The position numbers were made by a program, and so were the translations under genes. DNA of 64,000 bases, taken from assembly GCA_021613535.1 (NCBI GenBank), contig CP075493.1, positions 16,368,001 to 16,432,000 on the forward strand, given 5' to 3'. This DNA comes from Adineta vaga (taxonomy: Eukaryota > Animalia > Rotifera). The notes under the pieces were generated by a model, which saw only the letters and a program-made list of their open reading frames with translations, was not told the origin of the DNA and ran no database searches. How positions within the stretch are numbered: the first letter of the stretch is position 1; each line of letters starts with the position of its first letter. Positions 16,201 to 62,922 of this stretch are shown here, in pieces.

Positions 16201-16991
16201 TTTGGTTGAGAATAAGGAAGGACATTGATTATCAGTTTTTTCGATTACTCTTCCTGAAGATTATCGAATTGGCTTTTTGTGACGTTTCGGTGGGCGATGC
16301 CCCTTCGTCAGACTTTATTTCGAAATTACAACGACTTTTCACAGACACATATATATCTTTTTTCTTTTTCTAGTGGCTTATGTTACCTTTAAATGTTTTT
16401 TTTTGTGATTGGTTAATATTTTTAGATTACAAAGATTTGCATTCATAGTTCTGGTATAATAAATTAAGGAGCTAGGTGAATATTCCTTCATATTGTTGCC
16501 ACTTGTTTTCAATCTTTATGTTTGAAAAGCATAGAACAAGTGTCTCTTTATATTAGTTTCATCTTTTTGTGATAGGAAAATGTAAATTTTTTATTTTATT
16601 ATTGTTGTGAAAATAAACTGAATACTTAAACTTGAAATTATACGCCTATTCATAGCTTTAGAATTTAATCGGTTTGAAACATTAGAAATAACACTTGACC
16701 TGGGGCAGGCGTCTGATGGACATCTCTGGTATCTGCTGTTTTGTAAAATTTTAAACACTGATCAGAACTTTTTGCATACCTTCAGTAAATTCATTTAATA
16801 AACGACTCAATAAAATAATATAAAATGTTAATAGACTAACTTTTCTTATTCATAAGAAATAATCAATACAAGAATTTTTTTTTAGTTAAATTTTCCGAGT
16901 AAAAATAAGAGTATTAAATGTGTTCTCGATATAAGAAATAAAATTTGATTATTGATGAATTATATGTTCAAGATGATTTTGTCGTATTTTT
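16201..16991. repeat. 791-bp direct duplication, copy 1
   Basis: Near-identical to 25995-26785 (only ~3 substitutions noticed). Confidence 0.95.
16279..16313 (-). ncRNA. Degenerate hammerhead ribozyme-like motif (second copy 26073-26107)
   Basis: Minus strand gtCTGACGA-A-GGGGCATCGCCCACC-GAAAC-GTC-ac; core boxes intact but stems I and II imperfect. Confidence 0.55.
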
Positions 16992-17418
16992 AAAAATTTC
17001 ATTTAGTTGAGTGTATTGAATTAGTTGAATATATTCAATTAAATAAGACGTGAGTAAGATGAAAATCGGATGGTTCCATCGTAAGACTGGAATTATTTTT
17101 GTAATGTAGTTTAACATTCCATCAATAATTCAGTGGAATGAATAAGAGAGAAAAAGAAAGAAAAAATGCTTTTATGTTTTATAAAAAAAATAACTATCGA
17201 AACATTTGTTCTCTTAATGCCTTAAATAAATTGAAAATACATTAAATTAATGGCAACATGAAATGAAATAACTAGGAGGAGAAGTTTTACTGTAAACATT
17301 GATTAAATTTAAGAAGAAAAAAGGAAACATAAACTTGATAAACTGATCGTTTTCTTTCAGAAATGAAAACTTTGCGTCGTTTTTATATGAAATAAATTCT
17401 TGTTGAGAAGTATTTAAT

Positions 17419-18223
17419 ATGACGAAAAAAATAAATCAAACTTCCACAAAAGCAAATTCTAAAATACATCCAAAACAATCAGAAATCAACTATATAAATC
17501 AAGAAAATTATCATTCAAATAAAAAATCAAAGTTTGTTATCTCAATATAGAAGAATTATTCTCTTTTTTTTTTATAAATCATTTAGATGTTCCGTAACCC
17601 GATGTATTTGTATTCAATTATTAGTTTTATTATGTTGTCTTGTATTAGCAGCAATAATTATTCCAATTATTGTTATTATACTTGGTAAAAATTAGATTTT
17701 CTTTATATTTTTAAATTTAAATTTTCTTTTTCTTTTTTTATTAAGATACCAAAGTTAATCGTAAATATTTGAAATGAAATCTGTTTTGTTTTTAAATAGA
17801 AATCTGATTATTTTAGCATGTCAAACAACATACACGGATAGTTTTACATATTTGACAACACCAACAACTCAACAATGTACACAATGGAAAATTTTTACAA
17901 CTGGTTTAACTTGTTCATCATATTCTAAAATGCGTATTTACGGTTCAAATGATCCAACTGGAATAACAATAACAGATTCAGCTACTGTAACTGCATTTGC
18001 AGTAGCTTTAAGGTATAATACAAGTTTAAATACACTTTATAATGGAATTATTTGGAGAGCTGGTACATCATGTTGGGGTGGTTATGAATTAAGTTCAGTT
18101 ATTCAATGTGGTTGTGGGCAAGGGTATACAATTAGACCATGTACATATACTTCTTATTGGGGTGGAATCAATTCTGTTACATGTAATGCACAATCACAAA
18201 CGTTGTCGGTTACTTTTGAATGA
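17419..18223 (+). CDS. Type II membrane protein with Cys/Trp-rich extracellular domain (4 exons)
   Basis: ATG 17419; TM exon ~17588-17684; micro-exon ~17747-17761; last exon with YGSNDPTG, RPC...WGGINSVTCNAQSQT. Confidence 0.7.
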
Positions 18224-18753
18224 AAATTCTTTCCACTTTTTTTATTGGTTTTTACTCTGAACAATCCATATTTGAAATTTTTCTATCTTATGACCTATTC
18301 AATAAATTACAATAATTTAGAGGATTTTGTAGAGCAGATTCCATGCTATCGAATGACATCAAATATTCGTATATTTGGTTCATATTGGACGAAGATATTT
18401 ATCAAACAAAGAAGGTCTGAAAAATAGGCAAAACTTGACATGTTGGTTTTGGGTGCTAAACTTGCTAACCCAATTTCTCCACTATTCTGGCTTTTGTATA
18501 CATACACTATGATCTTTGAAACCACATATCAAAGATCGAAATCCCAGAACCATCTCCGGGCAGTTTAGTCTCTGCTGTCAAAAAGCTTCTCTTATACACC
18601 TGACTCTCTTGACTTATAGATATGCAATTTTTTGGTTATTCAACTTAATCAAACGGAAGTTGACTGAACAAAACAACTCAGAAAAATCTTTGTTCTCCAT
18701 CCTTAACATTCTCACATCTTTCTTTCGAAATCAATTTACATAGAATACATGAA

Positions 18754-19978
18754 TTAAAATAGTGAGTTCATCTTTATTATTCTTTTTAGAATCATGTATT
18801 TATGGACGACATCCAAGAAGACCTTGTCCGAAACCCAAAAGATTGATATAGGATTTTTGCCATCAGTAACTAATACCGATTGTATACCAAGTGCTTGTAA
18901 AAGTTTAACTTGTGTTTCAGAATCTGCTGTAGCAATACTTTGTATAGTAGAAACACCAATTGATTCGACCTGTGATTTAAACTTGTCAGCTTCAATTTGA
19001 GATAATTCGGCTTTTTTCTTAATTTCTAATTGATTTTGTTCACGTAAAAATTTCAATTCATTCTCGCGTACCGATGTCAATCGAGCTAATTCAGCATCGC
19101 CTTTGATTTTACTCGCTTGAGCTTTGAGACGTGCTAGAATTGAATATGTTATTTACAAATGATAGCAATCAGAAATAATACTGACCTTGTTCAACAGCTG
19201 CTTCATGTTGTATACGTTATGTCGTTCTAAGAGACCTTTTGCTTCTTGTTCACGACGTGATGCGTCATGTCTAGCGGTAGCTTCTTATGATTTCGTTGTA
19301 ATCTTAATGGAAAATTTATCTTTATAATTCAATAGAATTTTAAAAAATGACATTTCGATCTTACCTCAATTGCCATTTGTACACTTTGTTTAAGTGCATC
19401 ACGTGTTCGTTGATCAACAGGTTCAATACTTTGAATATCGATTGATGTAATAAAAAGATTATTTTGTGGAAAAACAAATCGTTCTCGAATATGCCTATTT
19501 TCATCAAGACCAAAAACTGATCCACGAATAATCTGAGTAGAATTTTTATGAAAATCATCAAATTGAATACCAGCTACAACACCACGAATACGTGAAGCAA
19601 TAGCTTTACAGGTATCACCAACAAAATCATCTACTGAAAAGAGTTTTGTCATTTCTTTCTTATCATTTTTATCGGTCAATTCAAAGTGCCAATCTAAAAA
19701 CAAGAAATCAGAATAATTAATAATGTTTATGAGTTCATTATTTCAAAAACTTACTATAAGCAAGTTGAAGTGAGAGACGAGCATATGATCAGCTGTTTCA
19801 ATGACAATACTACCTGTAAAGAAATTTGGACCAAGTAACAAACAAAGAAAATGAACTTGATTAGGAGTTTTGGGTACACCAGCACTAAGAGAAATCAATG
19901 TAAAATGTTCGTCAGGTTCAAGTATAATCATTTCTGGACCAAAGACAATACGAGCTGTTTTTGATTTGTAATCAGATT
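18754..19978 (-). pseudogene. MVP: Major vault protein, C-terminal half only
   Basis: [72 protein letters not shown]; stop codon, frameshifts and cap-helix deletion; 5' half absent. Confidence 0.92.
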
Positions 19979-19983
19979 TGATC

Positions 19984-20040
19984 TAGAAGCCATCTGATGA
20001 GATTGTGAAACTCAGTCGAAACCGGTCATGGCGGGTTCTA
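19984..20040 (+). ncRNA. Type I hammerhead ribozyme (Penelope/Athena-type)
   Basis: GCCAT-CTGATGA-GATTG(TGAAACT)CAGTC-GAAAC-CG-GTC^ATGGC; stem I extended by TAGAA/TTCTA; palindromic ACCGGT stem III; followed by CCCTCAA. Confidence 0.9.
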
Positions 20041-21668
20041 CCCTCAATACATTCTTTTCTGCAAAGGAGTGTGAGATGTTCAAATACATAAGAGATCATT
20101 GTCTACATTTACACACTCTCATTCTTAATATATTCAAAATAAGAATAAAGAAGATGTGAAAGTAATATTTTATAAATCAGTTTCATTTATTCTCATCAAG
20201 ATGTTCTCTCTCTCTCTAGTTCATTTTCAAGAAATATAAACTAGATACTATTTATTGATTTAAAAGTGATAATTATACGTAACATATATAAAGAATATTG
20301 AAACGTTTCGAAATTGAATATGATGCGCATTAAAATAAGATTCGAAGGAAATTTTTTCAATTCAGTTCTCGATGAAAATTTTAAAATGATTAACAGGATA
20401 AAAATAAATATATGATTAATCATGAATAAAACATAATTTATTGATAAATTTAAAATGATATAGAATGATTGTTCGAAAGATACTCTCAAATCTTATTCTT
20501 ACAATAGAATTTACCATGGATTTCAATGCTCAATAGAATAAATGATATGTTCAGTAACACCAAAAATTAAAAAAATAAGTAAATTATTAGAATGATCCAT
20601 AATTAAATAATTAGAAATTTCCATAATTAGTAAATAAAATTGATTCTTAGTTAGTTATATTTGGTTGAGTATATAAATTCAAGTGTTCTTTCTTTTCTTT
20701 TCGTATATAATACGATTACTACATACTTCTAAGTGTTGATTGATAATAGAAATAAATGTGGTTAATATTGCTCAATATGAAAGCGATTCATCAAATGAAG
20801 AGATTTATCCTGATAAAAAGGTCAACGAATAACGAAACATTGGATTAAACATGGTGTTGAAGCATTTATTACTAATGAATAGTCAAAACATGATGTCAAT
20901 TATTTAGAAAATGGTAGAAAAATATATTATAGTTACAAAAAAGCTAATTTTTCTGGCCCTTCAATGTAGTGCAAGTCTTTATTTATTTTCTCATGTAGAT
21001 AGTGATAGAGTTGCAATGTTTAGCGTAAAACTAACTTAGATCTTCCAATTGACGAAAACAAAGTTTTTGTCATATCATATAAAGTTTTGTGCGATGATGA
21101 AAGTGCGGTAATAACTTTCGATTACTTCACACAACGTTCATTTCTTCTCCTATACGCATATCTAGATACAACATACAAATTAATTTGAAAAGGATTTATG
21201 ATACTACTCATTTAAATAAAACATTTCATTCATTCAATCTTGTTATATGTTCAAATTGAAAAGAAAAAAAAAAGATTTCCAATTTATCTTCCTATTTTCT
21301 AATATTCATTCTACAACTGTTTTTCATTGATATCAGTACTATATTCTTATTTTATTCTCAAAGAATTTTTTGTTTCAAATAAAATTATTTGATTCATTCT
21401 GTTGTTTTTTCTATTAAATAAAAAACATATTTAATATGATACAGCATTTCTTATATTTCCGTTGTTCATGACAATCCCAATATTAGTTTTTTTCTTTTAA
21501 AAATGTTTATTCTACAAATAATATAGATTGTATTTCCTACTTATGAATAATTTTTTTTCTCAAAATCAACTGAAAAAAATCTTCCAATAAAATTATTTTT
21601 TTCTTGAGAAAAAAAGTTTTACTTCATTTTCACAACATTATTATTTTTAATTGCAAAACATAATTTGA

Positions 21669-24600
21669 ATGTCGTCTTTGAAAAATTATTTTCTTACTTT
21701 AAATCTTTTTACATCAGAATTTGATAAAACTGAAGATGAAACTATTGAACAACGTCGATGGAATATTATTGGAACACGAATTTATATTTTACTTCTGGTA
21801 ATAATTCTTATTGGTATTGCTATTGGTTTATCTTTAGTTAATCACACAATAAAGGTTATCATAGAAAATCCAACAAAAGAACAAATTGATCAACTCCCTA
21901 TTGATGCTAAATGTAAATGTTCTCAAATCTTAATACCTTATGGAACATTTACATCAGTTCAAGTTACTTTTCATGAAATATGTTCAAGTGATTTCATCAC
22001 AGATCGATGGATAAATGCAATCAATTCTGGATATAATACAACATTTTTTAATGGACGGGATTTTCGAACATATGGTAGTGCTGAATTTCAAAGTCTTGCG
22101 GGATTTTGTCGATTATCTAAATCTTATATAAATCAAAATATCGATTCATTTTATTCAAATACATTACTTAGTTCAGAAGTTTTATCTGAAAAAATTCTTC
22201 AATCTCAAACTTCTTCATCAATAAAACAATTTCAATTAATATCTTCAAATACATTTCAAAATCAATTAAATTTAATTAATAATATGATTGTTGGTAATGG
22301 ATTAAATAGTGCTCTTGGAACAGTTTATTATTATCAAATTCAACTGGATGATTTAGATCGTTTCATTGTTTTATTTATTTCTATAACAACAACTCAAGAA
22401 GATGGTTCAACTTGTTCTTGTCTAACAGATATTTGTAATAAAACTGTATCAGGTATATATAATGTATTTCAAGCACCACTTCCAACGCATAGTGGTGATT
22501 TATTATTTCGTATACCAGGAATATCATCTGGTTGTTTACCAGTAACATCAATACTTGCATCAACACTTGAATGTTTTTATGATCAAATATGTATTGATCA
22601 ACTTCTTTCTTATTTTCCTACAAATGATAAAAATTTTCAATCACTTTTAATAAATAATCAAAGTATTTTTAATTCTAAATCAACAATTCAATCAATTGTT
22701 AATAATTTAATGATTAAAAATTTAACAATTAATATATCTTACGAAAAATATTATTCACAATGTACACCATCATCATGTATTTATTTTCAAAATTCTCATT
22801 ATGATTTTAAATTTATTATTAAAAAATTAATTAGTTTATTTGCAAGTTTAATTTTAATACTTGAATTAATAATTCCATTTAGTATTAAATTTATTCAACA
22901 ATTAAAAGATCGAACACCTAAACCAAAGATTTCTTGTAAGTTGATTATTTAAATAATTCTATTTCTAGAATTTTCTTTTTCTTTCTTTATTCTGCTTAAA
23001 ACTGTGGCGGTTAGTCCCTAAGAGTAGTGAAGAATTAAAGAATAGAATGTGACGATAACAAACAGGAAGAATGCAATAATTACAAACAATAGAAAGAAAA
23101 CAATGACGTAATCGTCGTGTACATATATAATAACGTGATTGGTCATCTTCTCTTTCCATATCGTACATAATATAATCCTTGAAACCTCTTTACCAGGAGA
23201 AGAAATATGAACCTTCTGGTCTCTGAACTTCAGATGAATAGAACCACTATACCACAGAGATGTCTACCGCAGCTGAGCATGTACCGCTGCCGTGATGGTG
23301 ATTTTGAAAATCTTCAGATTTTCAAATTTCTGATCGGTTTGAATTAAATCCAATGCCTCTAAACGATCAAATTCGTCGAGTTTTATACTTTAGACGTCTT
23401 TGTCATGAGAATTTTGCGTAAAATAACGAGTTTTTCAAAGTGTCTTTTTTAAAAAACTGCCGCGCCGCCATCAACATCTCTGCTATGCCATCCTTGAATA
23501 CTCTATTTATAGACTTTTATTTTTCATTTATTTTTAGTATTAATTCGTTTATGTCAAATGAAAACTCTTATTAAAACGAAATTAATTGAATTGAATCTAT
23601 TTAAACATTATCCAAGTTCAGATCGACAAATACGTTATCAACGTTATGCAACACGATATCATTTAATTTCTATGATTATTTTAGTTTTTATTTTAACATT
23701 TTATACATTAACAATTAAAACAATTCAATCAAAAACAATTCAAAAACCAACTGAATTTGAATTTATTCAATTTGAAAAAGAATATTCTCAAACATTATCA
23801 TGTCCTTGTAGTTCAATATCAATGTTATATTCAGATTTTTTAACAATTTCTCCTCAATATCATCAAATATGTTCAAGTGATTTTATTTCCGATAAATGGT
23901 TCAATTATTTATATGGTTCAATGACAGGTCGATATTATGCGTATAATAGGGATTATCGATTTAGTGCACTTTTTCAATTTAAATTATTAAAAATTTTATG
24001 TAAACAATCTCATTCAATGATAAATGATGCACTTCAATTATTTTTTCAACGAAAATTTTTCAGTTTACAAGCTATGTCTCAAGAATCATTTCAAATTCAA
24101 ATTGAATCAGTTTTTCAAGATTGGGAATTAACAACAATTAAAACATTTCTAACAACAATTCAATTATTTCAAGCAATTATTCAAGGTAATCAATTAACAA
24201 ATATATTTAATTTTGGATTGGATATTGAATTGAATTCTTTTTTAAAAATGTATCCATCTATTTATTCAAATTGTAGTTGTACATATTCACCAACATGTCA
24301 TGAACTTGCTAGTATTTATAAATATGATGAAAATAATCAAGAACAAATTCAAATTTATACAATACCAAATTTTTATACTGGTTGTTATCAAATAACATCA
24401 TTATTACTATCAACATTAGAATGTTTTTATGATTTATCATGTTTATTACAAATTGATCGATATATTAATTCAACAATATCATTTCAATTTTCAGCACTTA
24501 ATTCAAATATTAATTCACCTTATGAAAAAATTGATAATCTTGTTGATCGATTAATGATTGATGAATGGTTACTAAATATATCATTTACATCATATTATTA

Positions 24601-25994: not shown

Positions 25995-26785
25995 TTTGGT
26001 TGAGAATAAGGAAGGACATTGATTATCAGTTTTTTCGATTACTCTTCCTGAAGATTATCGAATTGGTTTTTTGTGACGTTTCGGTGGGCGATGCCCCTTC
26101 GTCAGACTTTATTTCGAAATTACAACGACTTTTCACAGACACATATATATCTTTTTTCTTTTTCTAGTGGCTTATGTTACCTTTAAATGTTTTTTTTTGT
26201 GATTGGTTAATATTTTTAGATTACAAAGATTTGCATTCATAGTTCTGGTATAATAAATTAAGGAGCTAGGTGAATATTCCTTCATATTGTTGCCACTTGT
26301 TTTCAATCTTTATGTTTGAAAAGCATAGAACAAGTGTCTCTTTATATTAGTTTCATCTTTTTGTGATAGGAAAATGTAATTTTTTTATTTTATTATTGTT
26401 GTGAAAATAAACTGAATACTTAAACTTGAAATTATACGCCTATTCATAGCTTTAGAATTTAATCGGTTTGAAACATTAGAAATAACACTTGACCTGGGGC
26501 AGGCGTCTGATGGACATCTCTGGTATCTGCTGTTTTGTAAAATTTTAAACACTGATCAGAACTTTTTGCATACCTTCAGTAAATTCATTTAATAAACGAC
26601 TCATTAAAATAATATAAAATGTTAATAGACTAACTTTTCTTATTCATAAGAAATAATCAATACAAGAATTTTTTTTTAGTTAAATTTTCCGAGTAAAAAT
26701 AAGAGTATTAAATGTGTTCTCGATATAAGAAATAAAATTTGATTATTGATGAATTATATGTTCAAGATGATTTTGTCGTATTTTT
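25995..26785. repeat. 791-bp direct duplication, copy 2, capped by telomere-like repeats
   Basis: Identity to 16201-16991 ends exactly where GGGTGTGGGGTGGGTGTGGGG begins (26786). Confidence 0.95.
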
Positions 26786-27567: not shown

Positions 27568-27603
27568 TTGAGGGTGAGGGTGAGGGTGTGAGTGTGTGTG
27601 TGT
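27568..27603 (+). repeat. Interstitial telomere-like repeat (TGAGGG)x3 + TG
   Basis: TTGAGGGTGAGGGTGAGGGTGTGAGTGTGTG. Confidence 0.7.
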
Positions 27604-28413: not shown

Positions 28414-28487
28414 TTGAGGGGTGGGTGTGTGGGGTGGGTGTGGGTGTGGGTGTTAGATAGATGTAGTGCTCACACCCACACCCACCC
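28414..28487. repeat. Telomere-like hairpin element
   Basis: TTGAGGG(GTGGGT)n-GTTAGATAGATGTAGTGCT-CACACCCACACCCACCC. Confidence 0.85.
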
Positions 28488-29359
28488 AATATATCAAGAA
28501 GCATAAAATATCAACATAATCCGATAGAAACACGATATCATCACATAAAACCAAGAGTATCGACTTAATCCGTTTAAAAAGAAACAATTCAAAACTCATT
28601 CTACAACAAAATTATTCCTCATTAAAACAGACTAATCTACTATGCATGAAAATATTCAAGACATTTCTTTCTTTCTTACAAAAAACCAATACTCACATAA
28701 ATTTCTACTTTAAAATCAATTGCTCTTCTAGATTTAAAAACATAATCAATCCTATACTCCACAACAACAACATTATATAATTTGAATAGCTGTAATATAC
28801 CAAGGAAATCTCTCACATTCTACGTCAGTTCTTCAAAAAACTTTATTCATTTCATTTACCGTATTTCTGAAATCATCCATCAATTAGAACCTACAAAAAT
28901 TAATTTTGGTAATTAGTTTTCGAACTTTTCTTTTGAAGTTTTAATCTAATTCTTAAATTGATTTTCATGAAGATTATTCTTCTACCTACTGATGATTTTG
29001 ATACTTTCAACAAGTATTGAAAACTGGTTCGTGGTAGTTATATTAACATACAGACCCGAAGATTTAAAAGCCGAGCAAGAACGACTCACTAAATTAAGAG
29101 AAAGCTTATTAGCTAAAGGTTTACAAGTTTAATCTTCGATAAAATATAACTTTACAAATAATAAAATTTTATTTATGAAGTTTTATATTTCTCTCTATAT
29201 TTATAATGTTTGTGAACTGAATAAAGATAATCTTGACTTTATAATCTTTGACTAAAAACTGATTTTGTTTCGTGTAGATTTCGCATTTTTGTATGATATT
29301 TTCGTTTTGGAAGTACGATGCAACATCAAATATATCGATTACATACATTTCTTGTGTGA

Positions 29360-29427: not shown

Positions 29428-30940
29428 AATCCTGATGGTGAGAGTTGAGGATGGGTACCTTCTGTTCACTTTTACACGCCTACCCGAACCCTTGCTTTTC
29501 TTCACTTACTCCCGCTCTCAGTCTCTTTTAATCTTTCCTTTGATATATGGAGCGAGAAGAATCGATAAAAATGCGATAGTGGTCGCTTTGTAAGTAGGAA
29601 AGAAAGAACGAACATCATAAATGTCTGAATTTGCTCTCCTATTTATTTTTAAAGTGAATCACAATGACGCTGCCGAATTCTCTGTGAATGACGACGAGAG
29701 AAAAAAGATTTTTCTTTTACTTCCTGTTGGAATTTTCTAACTTGGCTGGTTTTTTCCTACATTGGATTATTTTTCTGCGTACAATGCTCTTGCCATTTCT
29801 ATTTTCATTTTTCGTTTAAAGGTATGTAGATAAAGAAAACAGTACATCGAAAATACAAGAGAAATATTTTTTCAATAAGAATAGTGCGTAATACATTTCT
29901 GTCGCATGGATAGGATGTTGTAGAGCATGCATGTCAGCAGAACTAGAACCGATACCGACTACCGGTCGGTCGGACCAATCGATCGATTTTAACGGCAATT
30001 TAGCCCTTTTCATATAAATATATACAAAACTTCTACGGGGTCTGAAGAGTCTTTTCCCAAGAATACGCACGTAGCTTTTTGTTGAAGTTCCCTTCATCAA
30101 TTACCACTGTCCAGGCTATAGACATATAAGTGTTTCTGGAACAAATTTCACGCTGGGCGGTACCATCTCTGAAAGTAGGCATGTGATGATACTAAGACGT
30201 TCATGTTAAGCGGTTTAATTCAATTAGCAAATCTTGTAGCACACTGCTAGAGAAGACAAGTTATTGTGATGATATAAGTAACTGCTATCAAAATTTTCAA
30301 AAAAGACAGTCGAACAAAATGCTTATAACTTTTTAATCAAAATAGCTCGAGTTCCGTAGGCTTCATTATTCGTAAGAAGGAATCGGGGGACGTTACCGAT
30401 CCTTGTTTTTGAACAATTAAGATCACAAGAGTCTAGCTACCTTGGTTAACAAACTATGAGGATTTTTTCCTCCATTGTTATTTACAAGACGAGTCACAGG
30501 CATCACTTAACTCACTAATATTAATGTTTATGTGATATATCAATCACTAGTATTAATTTATCAAAATAGACGATAAAATGAACGAGCTGATTTTAATATT
30601 TCTTTACTTTGACTCTTCAGTCAAGTGAAAATTACTTCCTGAAAGTAACGATAAATAATAAAATTTGAATAAAGGTTTTCATTATCGAGGCATTTGAAAT
30701 TGATAGGTTGTTTTTCCATATTTTTCGGTTATGTTTCGGCTAGAAGATAGCTATCTTGAGAACAAACAAGCCTTCCATCAAACATGACTAAAATCTCTCA
30801 CAATTGATAATCGTATGTTTGGAAGATTTTCTGCTGGATTTTGAGAAACTATTTATCAATTCAGATGCACCGATGCTGAAAATCGTTATCGAAGTTCCAC
30901 TAAAAACAATTTCCTTTGCTGAACTATTCTAATTAAAAAT

Positions 30941-31001
30941 GGATGAATGTGGGTATGAGCAGAGAAAAGGTACGTACACTCACACAGATCCACACCCTCA
31001 A
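30941..31001. repeat. Degenerate telomere-like hairpin element
   Basis: TGTGGGTATGAG ... CTCACAC ... CCACACCCTCAA. Confidence 0.65.
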
Positions 31002-40548: not shown

Positions 40549-40950
40549 GTAGTAATGTTATAAACATACTTTGAGGGTGTGGGTGAAGATGTGGTTGAGA
40601 GTAATGAAGGACGCTCATATGGTCTCGATAATTATGTGTAACAATTCACTAAACATAGTTCAACAGCATTGCTAAGAAATCAATCAAAGAATAACGAACA
40701 ACAAACCATGTCAGATTAGTAAATAAAAGTAATAAATGTGTGGGAAAGGAATAATAACACTGATATGCGAAGCTTTGATAAGTATTTAATAATATTTTGT
40801 ATTGAATTACAATACGTGTTGGATTTATAGTTAACTAAATTACATAAAATGAAAAATTCAATTGATCATATTTCACTCATGATGTCTACAGAAGTACTCT
40901 GTATGGTTATTCGAAATTCGTTGAAAGGGAGTTCGACTTTCGTAATGATC

Positions 40951-40997
40951 TTGAGGGTGGGTGTGAGTAAAGAAGATATATTCACACCCACACCCTC
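40951..40997. repeat. Telomere-like hairpin element (a G-arm-only copy also at 40571)
   Basis: TTGAGGGTGGGTGTGA-GTAAAGAAGATATAT-TCACACCCACACCCTC. Confidence 0.85.
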
Positions 40998-41039
40998 TTA
41001 TGTTATGCTTCAAATCTATAAGAATTCCACCAGAAATGA

Positions 41040-52814: not shown

Positions 52815-53875
52815 CAGAGATGGGCAAGTACGGAGTTTCTCGAGTACGAGTACTGTATAAATACTAATACCAATTTCCGAATGGAAATACTATTTCTTTA
52901 GATACGACTTCAAATTCGTAGCAATTAGTGGGAGACAGTTTTGTAGTTTTTGAATAATTGTACGATAAGTAAGTCAAAAAAATATTGCCAAAGAGAAATA
53001 TTAAAACAGTTTTTCATAAATTTATTTTACTATTAAACTTCAGGTAATTTAATCAAAGTAGAAATGAATTACATTTTAGAAAAGTTAATAAGCATACATT
53101 CTTGCCTGTTAATCGTGCCCGATGTGGCCGCATGATATATCCACTCTGCGAAAAGACACGTTCCACTGGTGTCGATGTTGCAGGTACCGTTAGATACTCA
53201 AGACTCACGTTAGAAGAATTTGTATCTTTGTTTGAATTATTTAATGAAGCTACAGTATTAACACAAGGTCAATCATATACAACCATTAGCCTTGTGGCAC
53301 CTACTGTTCTTGGTATACTTTTTGATCTTGAACGTGAACTTTGTTCTTCTTCTTCAACTCTTGTTCCACTATGTAAAACTCTTATTTCATCGATTAAAGC
53401 TAGATTTAGTGGTCTACTTCGTCATTTTGAAATCGATGTACCTTTTGATTCTTTTTGTATGTCAGAACGTTTTTCTGATGCGATTTTTCTTATTCCTCCA
53501 CTTCTTGATGCACGTTTTAAACTATTGTGGCTCAATAATCTTGATACAGTTGTAAAAGTGCGTGTTCTCGAAAAAATTCGTGCTGCATTTGTTCGTTTTT
53601 TCTCTAAATTAATCATTCTTGTGTCACGTAACGTAGGACCTGATATGTCAAAAGCAGCTGAACCAAGTGATGCTGGTGTAGCAACAAAAACTGATGATAC
53701 ATTACTTAAAAGAAAATGTCTTTTTCCTTATTTCAATGAAACGAAAAAGATTTCTGTCGATGACAAAGCCAAGATTTTAAGCGAATTAGATGCTTACTTG
53801 TGTGAAGAAAGTTGTGAAGCAAATCTAATTTTTATGAAAAATAATTTGTATCCATGCTTATACGAACTGACGGTA
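52815..53875 (+). mobile_element. hAT transposon remnant (TIR plus C-terminal transposase, truncated)
   Basis: CAGAGATGGGC end with GAGTAC subterminal repeats; FNEATVLTQGQSYTTIS, LLDARFK, ELDAYL...YPCLYEL cut within the dimerisation domain. Confidence 0.85.
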
Positions 53876-54414
53876 AGTACACAACAAACTCTATACGCCT
53901 ATGCGTAAACTGTTGAATTCCACACATTCTTTCACATAAACGACACGATAGAAAATTTCGCTCACATATACAAATGCGTAGTAGAGAGCAAAGTTCATTT
54001 TCTCTCTAATACCTATGTATACGAAGCTCTTTTTCCTTTCACAATCAGTCTTCAAATGCTACACAAGTAAGTACTAAATATCCTATCCAATATATATTAA
54101 TAAAAACTATTATTTTTATAATAACAAATATAGATCAGATCCGACTTATATACAATTATTCCATTACGACAACCTTCTAACATTTATTGACAATAGAGTT
54201 ATACCATCAAACATGGAATATACCAGTCATTATTCATCCGACAAAAACAATGTAAATAAGGCCATTGCAAGTTGAATGTGATTAATTATCTTGTATAATT
54301 AGTCATATTTGATTATGTAACAGTGCTTTAGCTATATGATTGATTTTGTAAATGTCTTATTTTGATTTCTTTGGAAGTTAAGATAAGTCTTTCTGAATCA
54401 GTCTGTAGTAGTGT

Positions 54415-54460
54415 AGTCATCTGATGAAGAACTGTAAAAAGTTCGAAACCGGTCATGACT
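54415..54460 (+). ncRNA. Type I hammerhead ribozyme (Athena/Terminon-type 3' end)
   Basis: AGTCAT-CTGATGA-A-GAACT(GTAAAA)AGTTC-GAAAC-CG-GTC^ATGACT; ACACCC at 54470-54475. Confidence 0.93.
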
Positions 54461-54573
54461 TCAAATCTCACACCCTTTTCTGGTCATTTTTGACTGTATT
54501 TCTTTTTTAGCAAAAAAAAAAGATTTCATTAACTTCGTTATGTATCAAAATTCATTTCATCAAAAAAATTATT

Positions 54574-62858: not shown

Positions 62859-62922
62859 AGCGGGTGTGGGTGTAGATAAATAATCGGCTGTCACCCTAAC
62901 TCCGCTCCACCCATACCCTCAA
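62859..62922. repeat. Telomere-like hairpin element
   Basis: GGGTGTGGGTGTAG ... CACCCATACCCTCAA. Confidence 0.75.

Follow-up and report, generated by a model that had tools for sequence, protein, structure and literature searches.

Results

Between a broken gene and a run of essentially single-copy DNA on chromosome 1 of the bdelloid rotifer Adineta vaga lies a patch of 85 bases (19963–20047, + strand; positions are those of the window, the whole 64,000-nucleotide stretch of DNA that was analyzed). Most likely the patch is filler between two DNA ends, the scar of a break repaired by reverse transcription. It comprises the tail of a retroelement plus CCCTCAA or, by content, a hammerhead ribozyme, a 13-nt tail and one telomere-type unit. 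The locus is at about 16.39 Mb of chromosome 1 in an assembly of 100.8 Mb and six contigs; A. vaga has six chromosomes and (TGTGGG)n telomeres (PMC8494291).

The patch as a retroelement tail

Positions 19963–20040 (+, ∼78 nt) correspond to the 5′-truncated 3′ end of a Penelope-like element of the Athena/Terminon type. At least nine genomic copies match 19963–20041 at 80% to 93% identity, with homology to the family in blastn alignments ending at 20036 or 20041. On the left, blastn against the relatives places the 5′ truncation at 19963–65; the first-pass annotation had set this end at 19975, and family homology in fact begins slightly further left (19963–19965). On the right, the patch starts exactly at the element-to-telomere transition of the family. 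In 16 genomic relatives the hammerhead and a short tail lead directly into C-strand telomeric repeats, which are long in the copy at C3:17.6 kb, number a few units in others and include CACCCT variants.

These relatives end in repeats of the (ACACCC) or (TCACCC) type, and a hammerhead with (ACACCC)n or (TCACCC)n behind it is the signature of Athena/Terminon 3′ ends (PMC6431247, PMC8557442). Athena and Terminon are Penelope-like elements that lack an endonuclease and occur in bdelloid rotifers (Gladyshev & Arkhipova 2007, Arkhipova et al. 2017, reviewed in PMC6431247). The Athena/Terminon-type identity proposed in the first-pass annotation is borne out in that family members end in reverse-complement telomeric repeats, as described in PMC6431247 and PMC8557442. 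To judge from its sequence, the patch is thus a truncated Athena/Terminon-type 3′ end of A. vaga.

Three relatives have more than 1.3 kb of upstream homology in common, and four (L022, L027, L028 and L029) are just 70–107 nt long, short like the window copy. The 5′ ends of L027 and L028, the two examined, are capped by telomeric repeats. Since short copies of 70–107 nt exist elsewhere, very short extensions can be counted among the usual products.

At the window locus, the open reading frame (ORF) for a reverse transcriptase (RT) is absent owing to the 5′ truncation. A genome-wide RVT_1 scan gave no match beside any hammerhead copy, and a Pfam scan gave no RT domain in the ORFs of L057 (up to 10 kb); for L055 and L056 the search was a long-ORF screen only, and the L055 region ends ∼2.6 kb short of its hammerhead. 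The regions next to the three longer relatives (up to 10 kb) hold host-type genes only. Because no RT ORF was found beside the longer relatives examined, the Athena/Terminon assignment is made on 3′ architecture and the literature. In L057 (C3:18304000–18313999), the longer Athena-type 3′ fragment at C3:18.30 Mb adjoins a FAD-binding monooxygenase-like ORF and fragments of ASC sodium-channel genes.

The hammerhead within the patch

A minimal type I hammerhead is complete at 19989–20032 (+), every core base being present as read from the sequence. Helix I (19989–19993/20028–20032, gccat/atggc) and helix II (20001–20005/20013–20017, with a 7-nt closing loop) are perfect. The core elements CUGAUGA and GAAA occupy 19994–20000 and 20018–20021, and palindromic ACCGGT (20021–20026) yields a 1-bp helix III with a palindromic loop. 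Cleavage is predicted after C17, which is C20027. All of C3-U4-G5-A6-N7-G8-A9, G12-A13-A14, A15.1-U16.1 and H17 were found (19994–20000, 20018–20021 and 20026–20027). The exact hammerhead pattern has two matches in the window versus none in 100 shuffles.

No hammerhead match was obtained with Rfam models, either at the gathering score over the whole window or at E ≤ 10 over 451 nt, and for this reason a covariance model of the family itself was built on 15 genomic relatives, neither window copy being among them. This model aligned to 19982–20043 over its full length with all pairs standard (75.3 bits, E 4.4e-20). Across 17 aligned copies, helices I and II are paired in 88.8% of cases versus 15–49% when the partners are slid, and compensatory change is seen at 7 of the 10 helix pairs, in helix I and in helix II. 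The folding energy of the 73-mer is unexceptional relative to shuffles (z −0.14). The claim of a complete type I hammerhead with an ACCGGT stem III therefore stands on the agreement of core, helices and family-model score; the match to type I covariance models that had been suggested as a check is absent from Rfam at E ≤ 10 and present only with the family-specific model.

In animal Penelope-like elements, those of rotifers included, hammerheads take this form, with a palindromic loop on a helix III of 1 bp, and such minimal hammerheads need a dimer, monomer cleavage being undetectable in vitro (PMC4209133). One hammerhead copy only is found at 19989–20032, and none of the RNA runs contains the hammerhead stretch. 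As a single copy of a dimer-dependent type for which no transcript was found, the hammerhead is probably a passenger.

The description of this hammerhead as isolated is accurate, since a scan of the window with the family model places the nearest family member 34 kb away, at 54409–54470. That second hammerhead (+, 45 bits) is followed by ...CACACCC (to 54475), and a hAT-like ORF (53102–53908) lies upstream on the same strand. A hammerhead-like string, CUGACGA...GAAAC GUC, at 16266–16311 and 26060–26105 (−) was rejected: it has no convincing helix I and is missed by the family model. It sits in a duplicated block of ∼0.8 kb and is probably no ribozyme.

The CCCTCAA edge

The element tail is closed at its 3′ junction by CCCTCAA (20041–20047, +, 7 nt), which is TTGAGGG on the minus strand. 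Throughout the genome, ACCC-N0-3-CCCTCAA occurs 1,699 times versus 11 times for the reversed control, and the exact 14-mer 1,056 times versus 2. At 30 of 30 sampled loci CCCTCAA closes a C-rich tract against unrelated sequence. The bases past CCCTCAA at these loci match GATGG over 0, 1, 2, 3, 4 or 5 nt in 10, 2, 2, 5, 4 and 7 cases, respectively, a variability best read as uneven starting points on a fixed template. In about half of the 30 loci an inverted G-rich arm lies just upstream, so that the two arms form head-to-head hairpins. A hammerhead was absent from all 28 CCCTCAA loci sampled for it; the TTGAGGG start is therefore not specific to Athena.

Three other ACCGGT hammerheads were found by genome search to be followed by C-rich repeats and then CCCTCAA. 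In the patch, the hammerhead tail meets CCCTCAA with no canonical repeats between them. The window has 10 CCCTCAA sites, of which at least 7 are the closing edge of a telomere-like tract. From the genome-wide and window patterns together it follows that the CCCTCAA of the hammerhead is the ordinary outer edge of an added tract. The first-pass annotation had recognized the motif directly after the hammerhead as the edge of the hairpin family, and the genome-wide counts (1,699 versus 11) uphold this.

Interstitial telomere-like tracts are frequent in the window, with 30 near-matches to the C-strand decamer versus 0.36 expected. Examples are at 27568–27600, 28414–28490, 30940–31001, 40571–40590, 40951–41005 and 62860–62922. 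At their border with unique DNA such tracts open with (CCATC)TTGAGGG, and a G-arm and a C-arm are often arranged as head-to-head hairpins. The ragged GATGG boundary looks as though it was copied from one RNA ending ...CCCUCAAGAUGG. A candidate template for the (CCATC)TTGAGGG start is telomerase RNA, by analogy with TERC-ITS, in which telomeric repeats and telomerase-RNA-derived sequence are inserted at double-strand breaks (PMC2246262, PMC8537989). If telomerase RNA is the template, ...CUCAAGAUGG would be expected 3′ of its template.

The MVP remnant

The left neighbor of the patch is the 5′-truncated remnant of a gene for the major vault protein (MVP), at 18754–19974 (−). It covers the end of repeat 9, the shoulder and the cap-helix region, and contains Pfam Vault_3 (profile positions 16–62) and MVP_shoulder domains. 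Its first MVP residue corresponds to rat MVP D472, within repeat 9 (Vault_3 position 16 of 62), so the truncation falls in the middle of an exon and of a domain. Over 18791–19974, DNA identity is 82–83% to the MVP paralogue at C3:17.98 Mb and 68–76% to other paralogues. A GT..AG intron at 19694–19761 (−) is present in the C3:17.98 Mb paralogue and lacking in the C6 paralogue (∼61 nt). Because it has been retained, the remnant is a DNA-level genomic copy, not a retrocopy.

An in-frame TAA stop lies at 19285–19287 (−), where paralogues have Gln (ITTKS*EA, from tblastn of paralogue frames); the paralogue contigs have G at 19287. The complete MVP architecture, with N-terminal vault repeats, shoulder and cap helix in one open gene, is absent, and only the part from residue ∼472 onward remains. 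The remnant is a pseudogene.

The first-pass annotation had named, as an observation that would count against it, a longer insertion and, further right, the MVP 5′ half. No MVP 5′ half was found by blastn of 17000–22000 against six paralogue loci, no N-terminal MVP sequence was found elsewhere in the 64 kb by tblastn of paralogue frames, and a whole-genome Pfam Vault scan gave no vault repeat (PF01505) anywhere on chromosome 1. Given this absence, such an insertion is unsupported and the claim of truncation stands.

The MVP/patch junction

The window was aligned three ways, with three MVP paralogues and five Athena-type relatives. The MVP paralogues align ungapped to 19974 and, with one mismatch or a 2-nt gap, to 19980–81; the Athena-type relatives align from 19960–65. 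The two sources thus have in common a junction zone, 19963–19981, with ∼19 nt of imperfect homology around an exact TTTGTAATCA (19965–19974), that is, a microhomology of 10–19 nt. In the first-pass annotation, MVP coding similarity stopped within about 10 bp of the left end of the hammerhead. The gene is indeed truncated there, but its similarity overlaps the patch (to 19974–19981) instead of falling short of it.

A comparison of 2.6 kb of MVP with 1.3 kb of Athena tail gives ∼8 common 10-mers, which is the chance level. With that number, the probability that a junction would fall on one of them unguided by homology is roughly 1e-5 to 1e-6; that the junction lies exactly on a common 10-mer therefore shows it to be homology-guided. 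TTTGTAATCA is the common 10-mer nearest the 3′ end of the element (80 nt), and a growing cDNA that pairs at the first match would be expected to use the nearest one. Read on the minus strand, the order is right flank, TTGAGGG, antisense Athena ending ...TGATTACAAA and MVP sense, a polarity that fits the annealing of two 3′ tails. The flanks have no direct repeat in common, and hence no target-site duplication (TSD). Four traits of endonuclease-independent insertion are present: no TSD, 5′ truncation, 5′ microhomology and loss of target DNA.

In tblastn, the alignments of two MVP paralogues were extended to 20036 over the antisense hammerhead (TRHDRFRL versus TKRDRWKV). This extension was dismissed as coincidence because Athena-type copies at unrelated loci have conserved the bases concerned and DNA similarity is lacking there.

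The junction is real, independent public runs being in agreement. At least half of the sampled words of 19400–20600 occur in 7 runs from four separate studies, and 96% occur in 4 runs, one per study. A mismatch-free unitig, 19753–19992, crosses the junction in the 2015 and 2022 runs and extends just 11–29 letters beyond it; a second unitig covers 19963–21500 in the 2015 run and 20004–21500 in the 2022 run. In run X1, the unitig depth of the locus (18500–21500) is 71–97 versus 128–163 for unitigs of MVP paralogues, a ratio that is weaker in X2. The locus may be on one haplotype only, or the haplotypes may have diverged.

Right flank and chromosomal setting

The right flank (20048–21668) is essentially single-copy, non-MVP DNA: a search of the A. 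vaga genome returned the flank itself and a weak match (75%, ∼200 nt) on C6, and no MVP similarity was found within it. Since the flank is essentially single-copy, there is no empty site within the assembly. In contigs of two other organisms (X12 and X13) only scraps were found, and no ancestral state.

The segment right of the patch (∼6.7 kb) ends at 26783, where the + strand bears a G-strand addition and then a C-rich arm. The outward additions of the segment 20048–26860 are, at its left end, TTGAGGG with the Athena tail and, at its right end (26783), TTGGGTGTGGGG.... From the left patch and the addition at 26783 it follows that both 3′ ends of the 6.7-kb segment bear outward additions, and a once-free DNA fragment would look like this. 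On the other side of the locus, a Cys-rich ORF of 149 aa (17774–18223, within 17442–18226, +) belongs to a dispersed family of at least 10 copies; copies of the 17442–18226 family have 65–72% DNA identity and are on chromosomes 1, 3 and 5.

Chromosome 1 is at least 18.03 Mb long, which puts the patch at least 1.6 Mb from its right end. Six of nine relatives are in the orientation consistent with addition at a telomere, within 0–3 Mb of an end. The window copy (+), on the right arm, has the orientation opposite to that of an addition at that telomere, which argues against the patch being a simple relic of the nearby telomere.

Discussion

The course of events that we favor, with confidence that is about evenly balanced, begins at the right flank. 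A free 3′-OH on the minus strand of the present right flank, the inferred primer, would have received TTGAGGG, the same opening letters as those of the ∼1,700 telomere-like tracts of the genome. An uncleaved Athena-type RNA would then have offered its C-rich tail for pairing to the G-rich end, and reverse transcription would have carried that end through the hammerhead, for ∼75 nt. The nascent 3′ end would have annealed, at the 10–19-nt microhomology, to a resected 3′ overhang in an exon of an MVP paralogue, after which flaps would have been trimmed, gaps filled and the MVP 5′ half lost. The TTGAGGG step may have involved a different enzyme and a different template, as CCCTCAA tracts usually have no hammerhead.

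The first-pass annotation had proposed RT-mediated repair at an internal break. In favor of this are the Athena-type tail, its natural 3′ edge, CCCTCAA, the MVP truncation and the microhomology; we infer the RNA template, the enzyme, the internal position of the break and the origin of both junctions in a single event. Note that the 78 nt of element tail carry nothing that would tell an RNA template from a DNA template.

The same end product would result from two steps, a possibility that we regard as real, if the less probable. A longer Athena/Terminon copy would have been added to the TTGAGGG-tipped flank, at a former chromosome end or a break, and later microhomology-mediated end joining at TTTGTAATCA would have removed both the body of the element and the 5′ half of MVP. 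Common 10-mers between MVP and the Athena tail are at the chance level, so a suitable microhomology would have been available. Host genes trapped between Terminon copies and internalized arrays have been described (PMC6431247), and telomeric linkers are numerous in this patchwork region. This course nevertheless takes two events that are independent of each other; of the ∼8 common 10-mers, the junction has the one nearest the 3′ end of the element; and elsewhere, very short copies with the hammerhead alone are common as first products.

It is improbable that the ∼85 bp were copied or ligated from a genomic Athena 3′ junction without reverse transcription, whether by templated insertion of the polymerase-theta type, by MMBIR or by fragment capture. 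Templated insertions at microhomology junctions are known, the bdelloid genome has been fragmented repeatedly and no feature of the patch is RNA-specific; a start exactly at the natural 3′ edge of the element with CCCTCAA would, however, be due to chance, and no genomic copy is more than 93% identical or has the same flank. It is very improbable indeed that the hammerhead works as a stand-alone ribozyme or serves a truncated MVP transcript as regulatory RNA, since the intact core and two perfect helices are outweighed by the single copy with its 1-bp helix III and palindromic loop (a monomer type reported to be inactive, PMC4209133), its absence from the RNA runs, its position antisense to an MVP remnant that has a stop, and a folding energy no better than that of shuffles.

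The systems closest to the patch as reverse-transcribed repair filler are Athena/Terminon additions, endonuclease-independent L1 insertions and TERC-ITS. Like Athena/Terminon copies, it has a 3′ hammerhead followed at once by reverse-complement telomeric sequence, is 5′-truncated, has relatives that mostly lie toward chromosome ends and would have been attached to a G-rich 3′ end. It differs from them in its length of ∼78 nt, in a 5′ end joined to a host exon by microhomology instead of being telomere-capped, in its one 7-nt telomere-type unit, in its opposite orientation and in having no linked RT ORF. Like the minimal hammerheads of type I that Penelope-like elements carry (Cervera & de la Pena 2014, PMC4209133), the ribozyme has a conserved core, a G10.1-C11.1 pair and a short helix III whose loop is palindromic, and its family within the genome shows covariation; unlike those, the window locus has no pseudo-LTR or tandem pair, and Rfam models give no score.

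With endonuclease-independent L1 insertions at breaks or dysfunctional telomeres (PMC1920257), the patch shares the hallmarks of cDNA primed on a pre-existing 3′-OH: no TSD, 5′ truncation, microhomology at the 5′ junction and loss of target DNA. The patch comes from another retroelement clade and is far shorter, and its priming would have been through telomere-type complementarity, versus a poly(A) tail in L1. TERC-ITS likewise consist of RNA-templated filler with telomere-type repeats at repaired breaks and include head-to-head arrangements. In the patch, unlike in TERC-ITS, the filler runs on into a retroelement tail, and for the rotifer TTGAGGG(ATGG-complement) start telomerase RNA is no more than a candidate source.

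Taken alone, the locus is one more truncated Athena/Terminon end plus a dead MVP copy. The succession of flank, TTGAGGG, antisense tail, microhomology and broken gene is the product to be expected if a telomere-attaching RT patched a break away from a telomere. More tentatively, the locus could be a caught intermediate that links the ∼1,700 hairpin scars to retroelement cDNA synthesis: 3′ ends would routinely be extended on an RNA template from (CCATC)TTGAGGG and may prime reverse transcription of Athena type, followed by rejoining at microhomologies. Bdelloid rotifers survive massive chromosome breakage, and A. vaga is desiccation-tolerant and asexual. If the locus is such an intermediate, reverse transcription would be a regular arm of double-strand-break repair in bdelloids.
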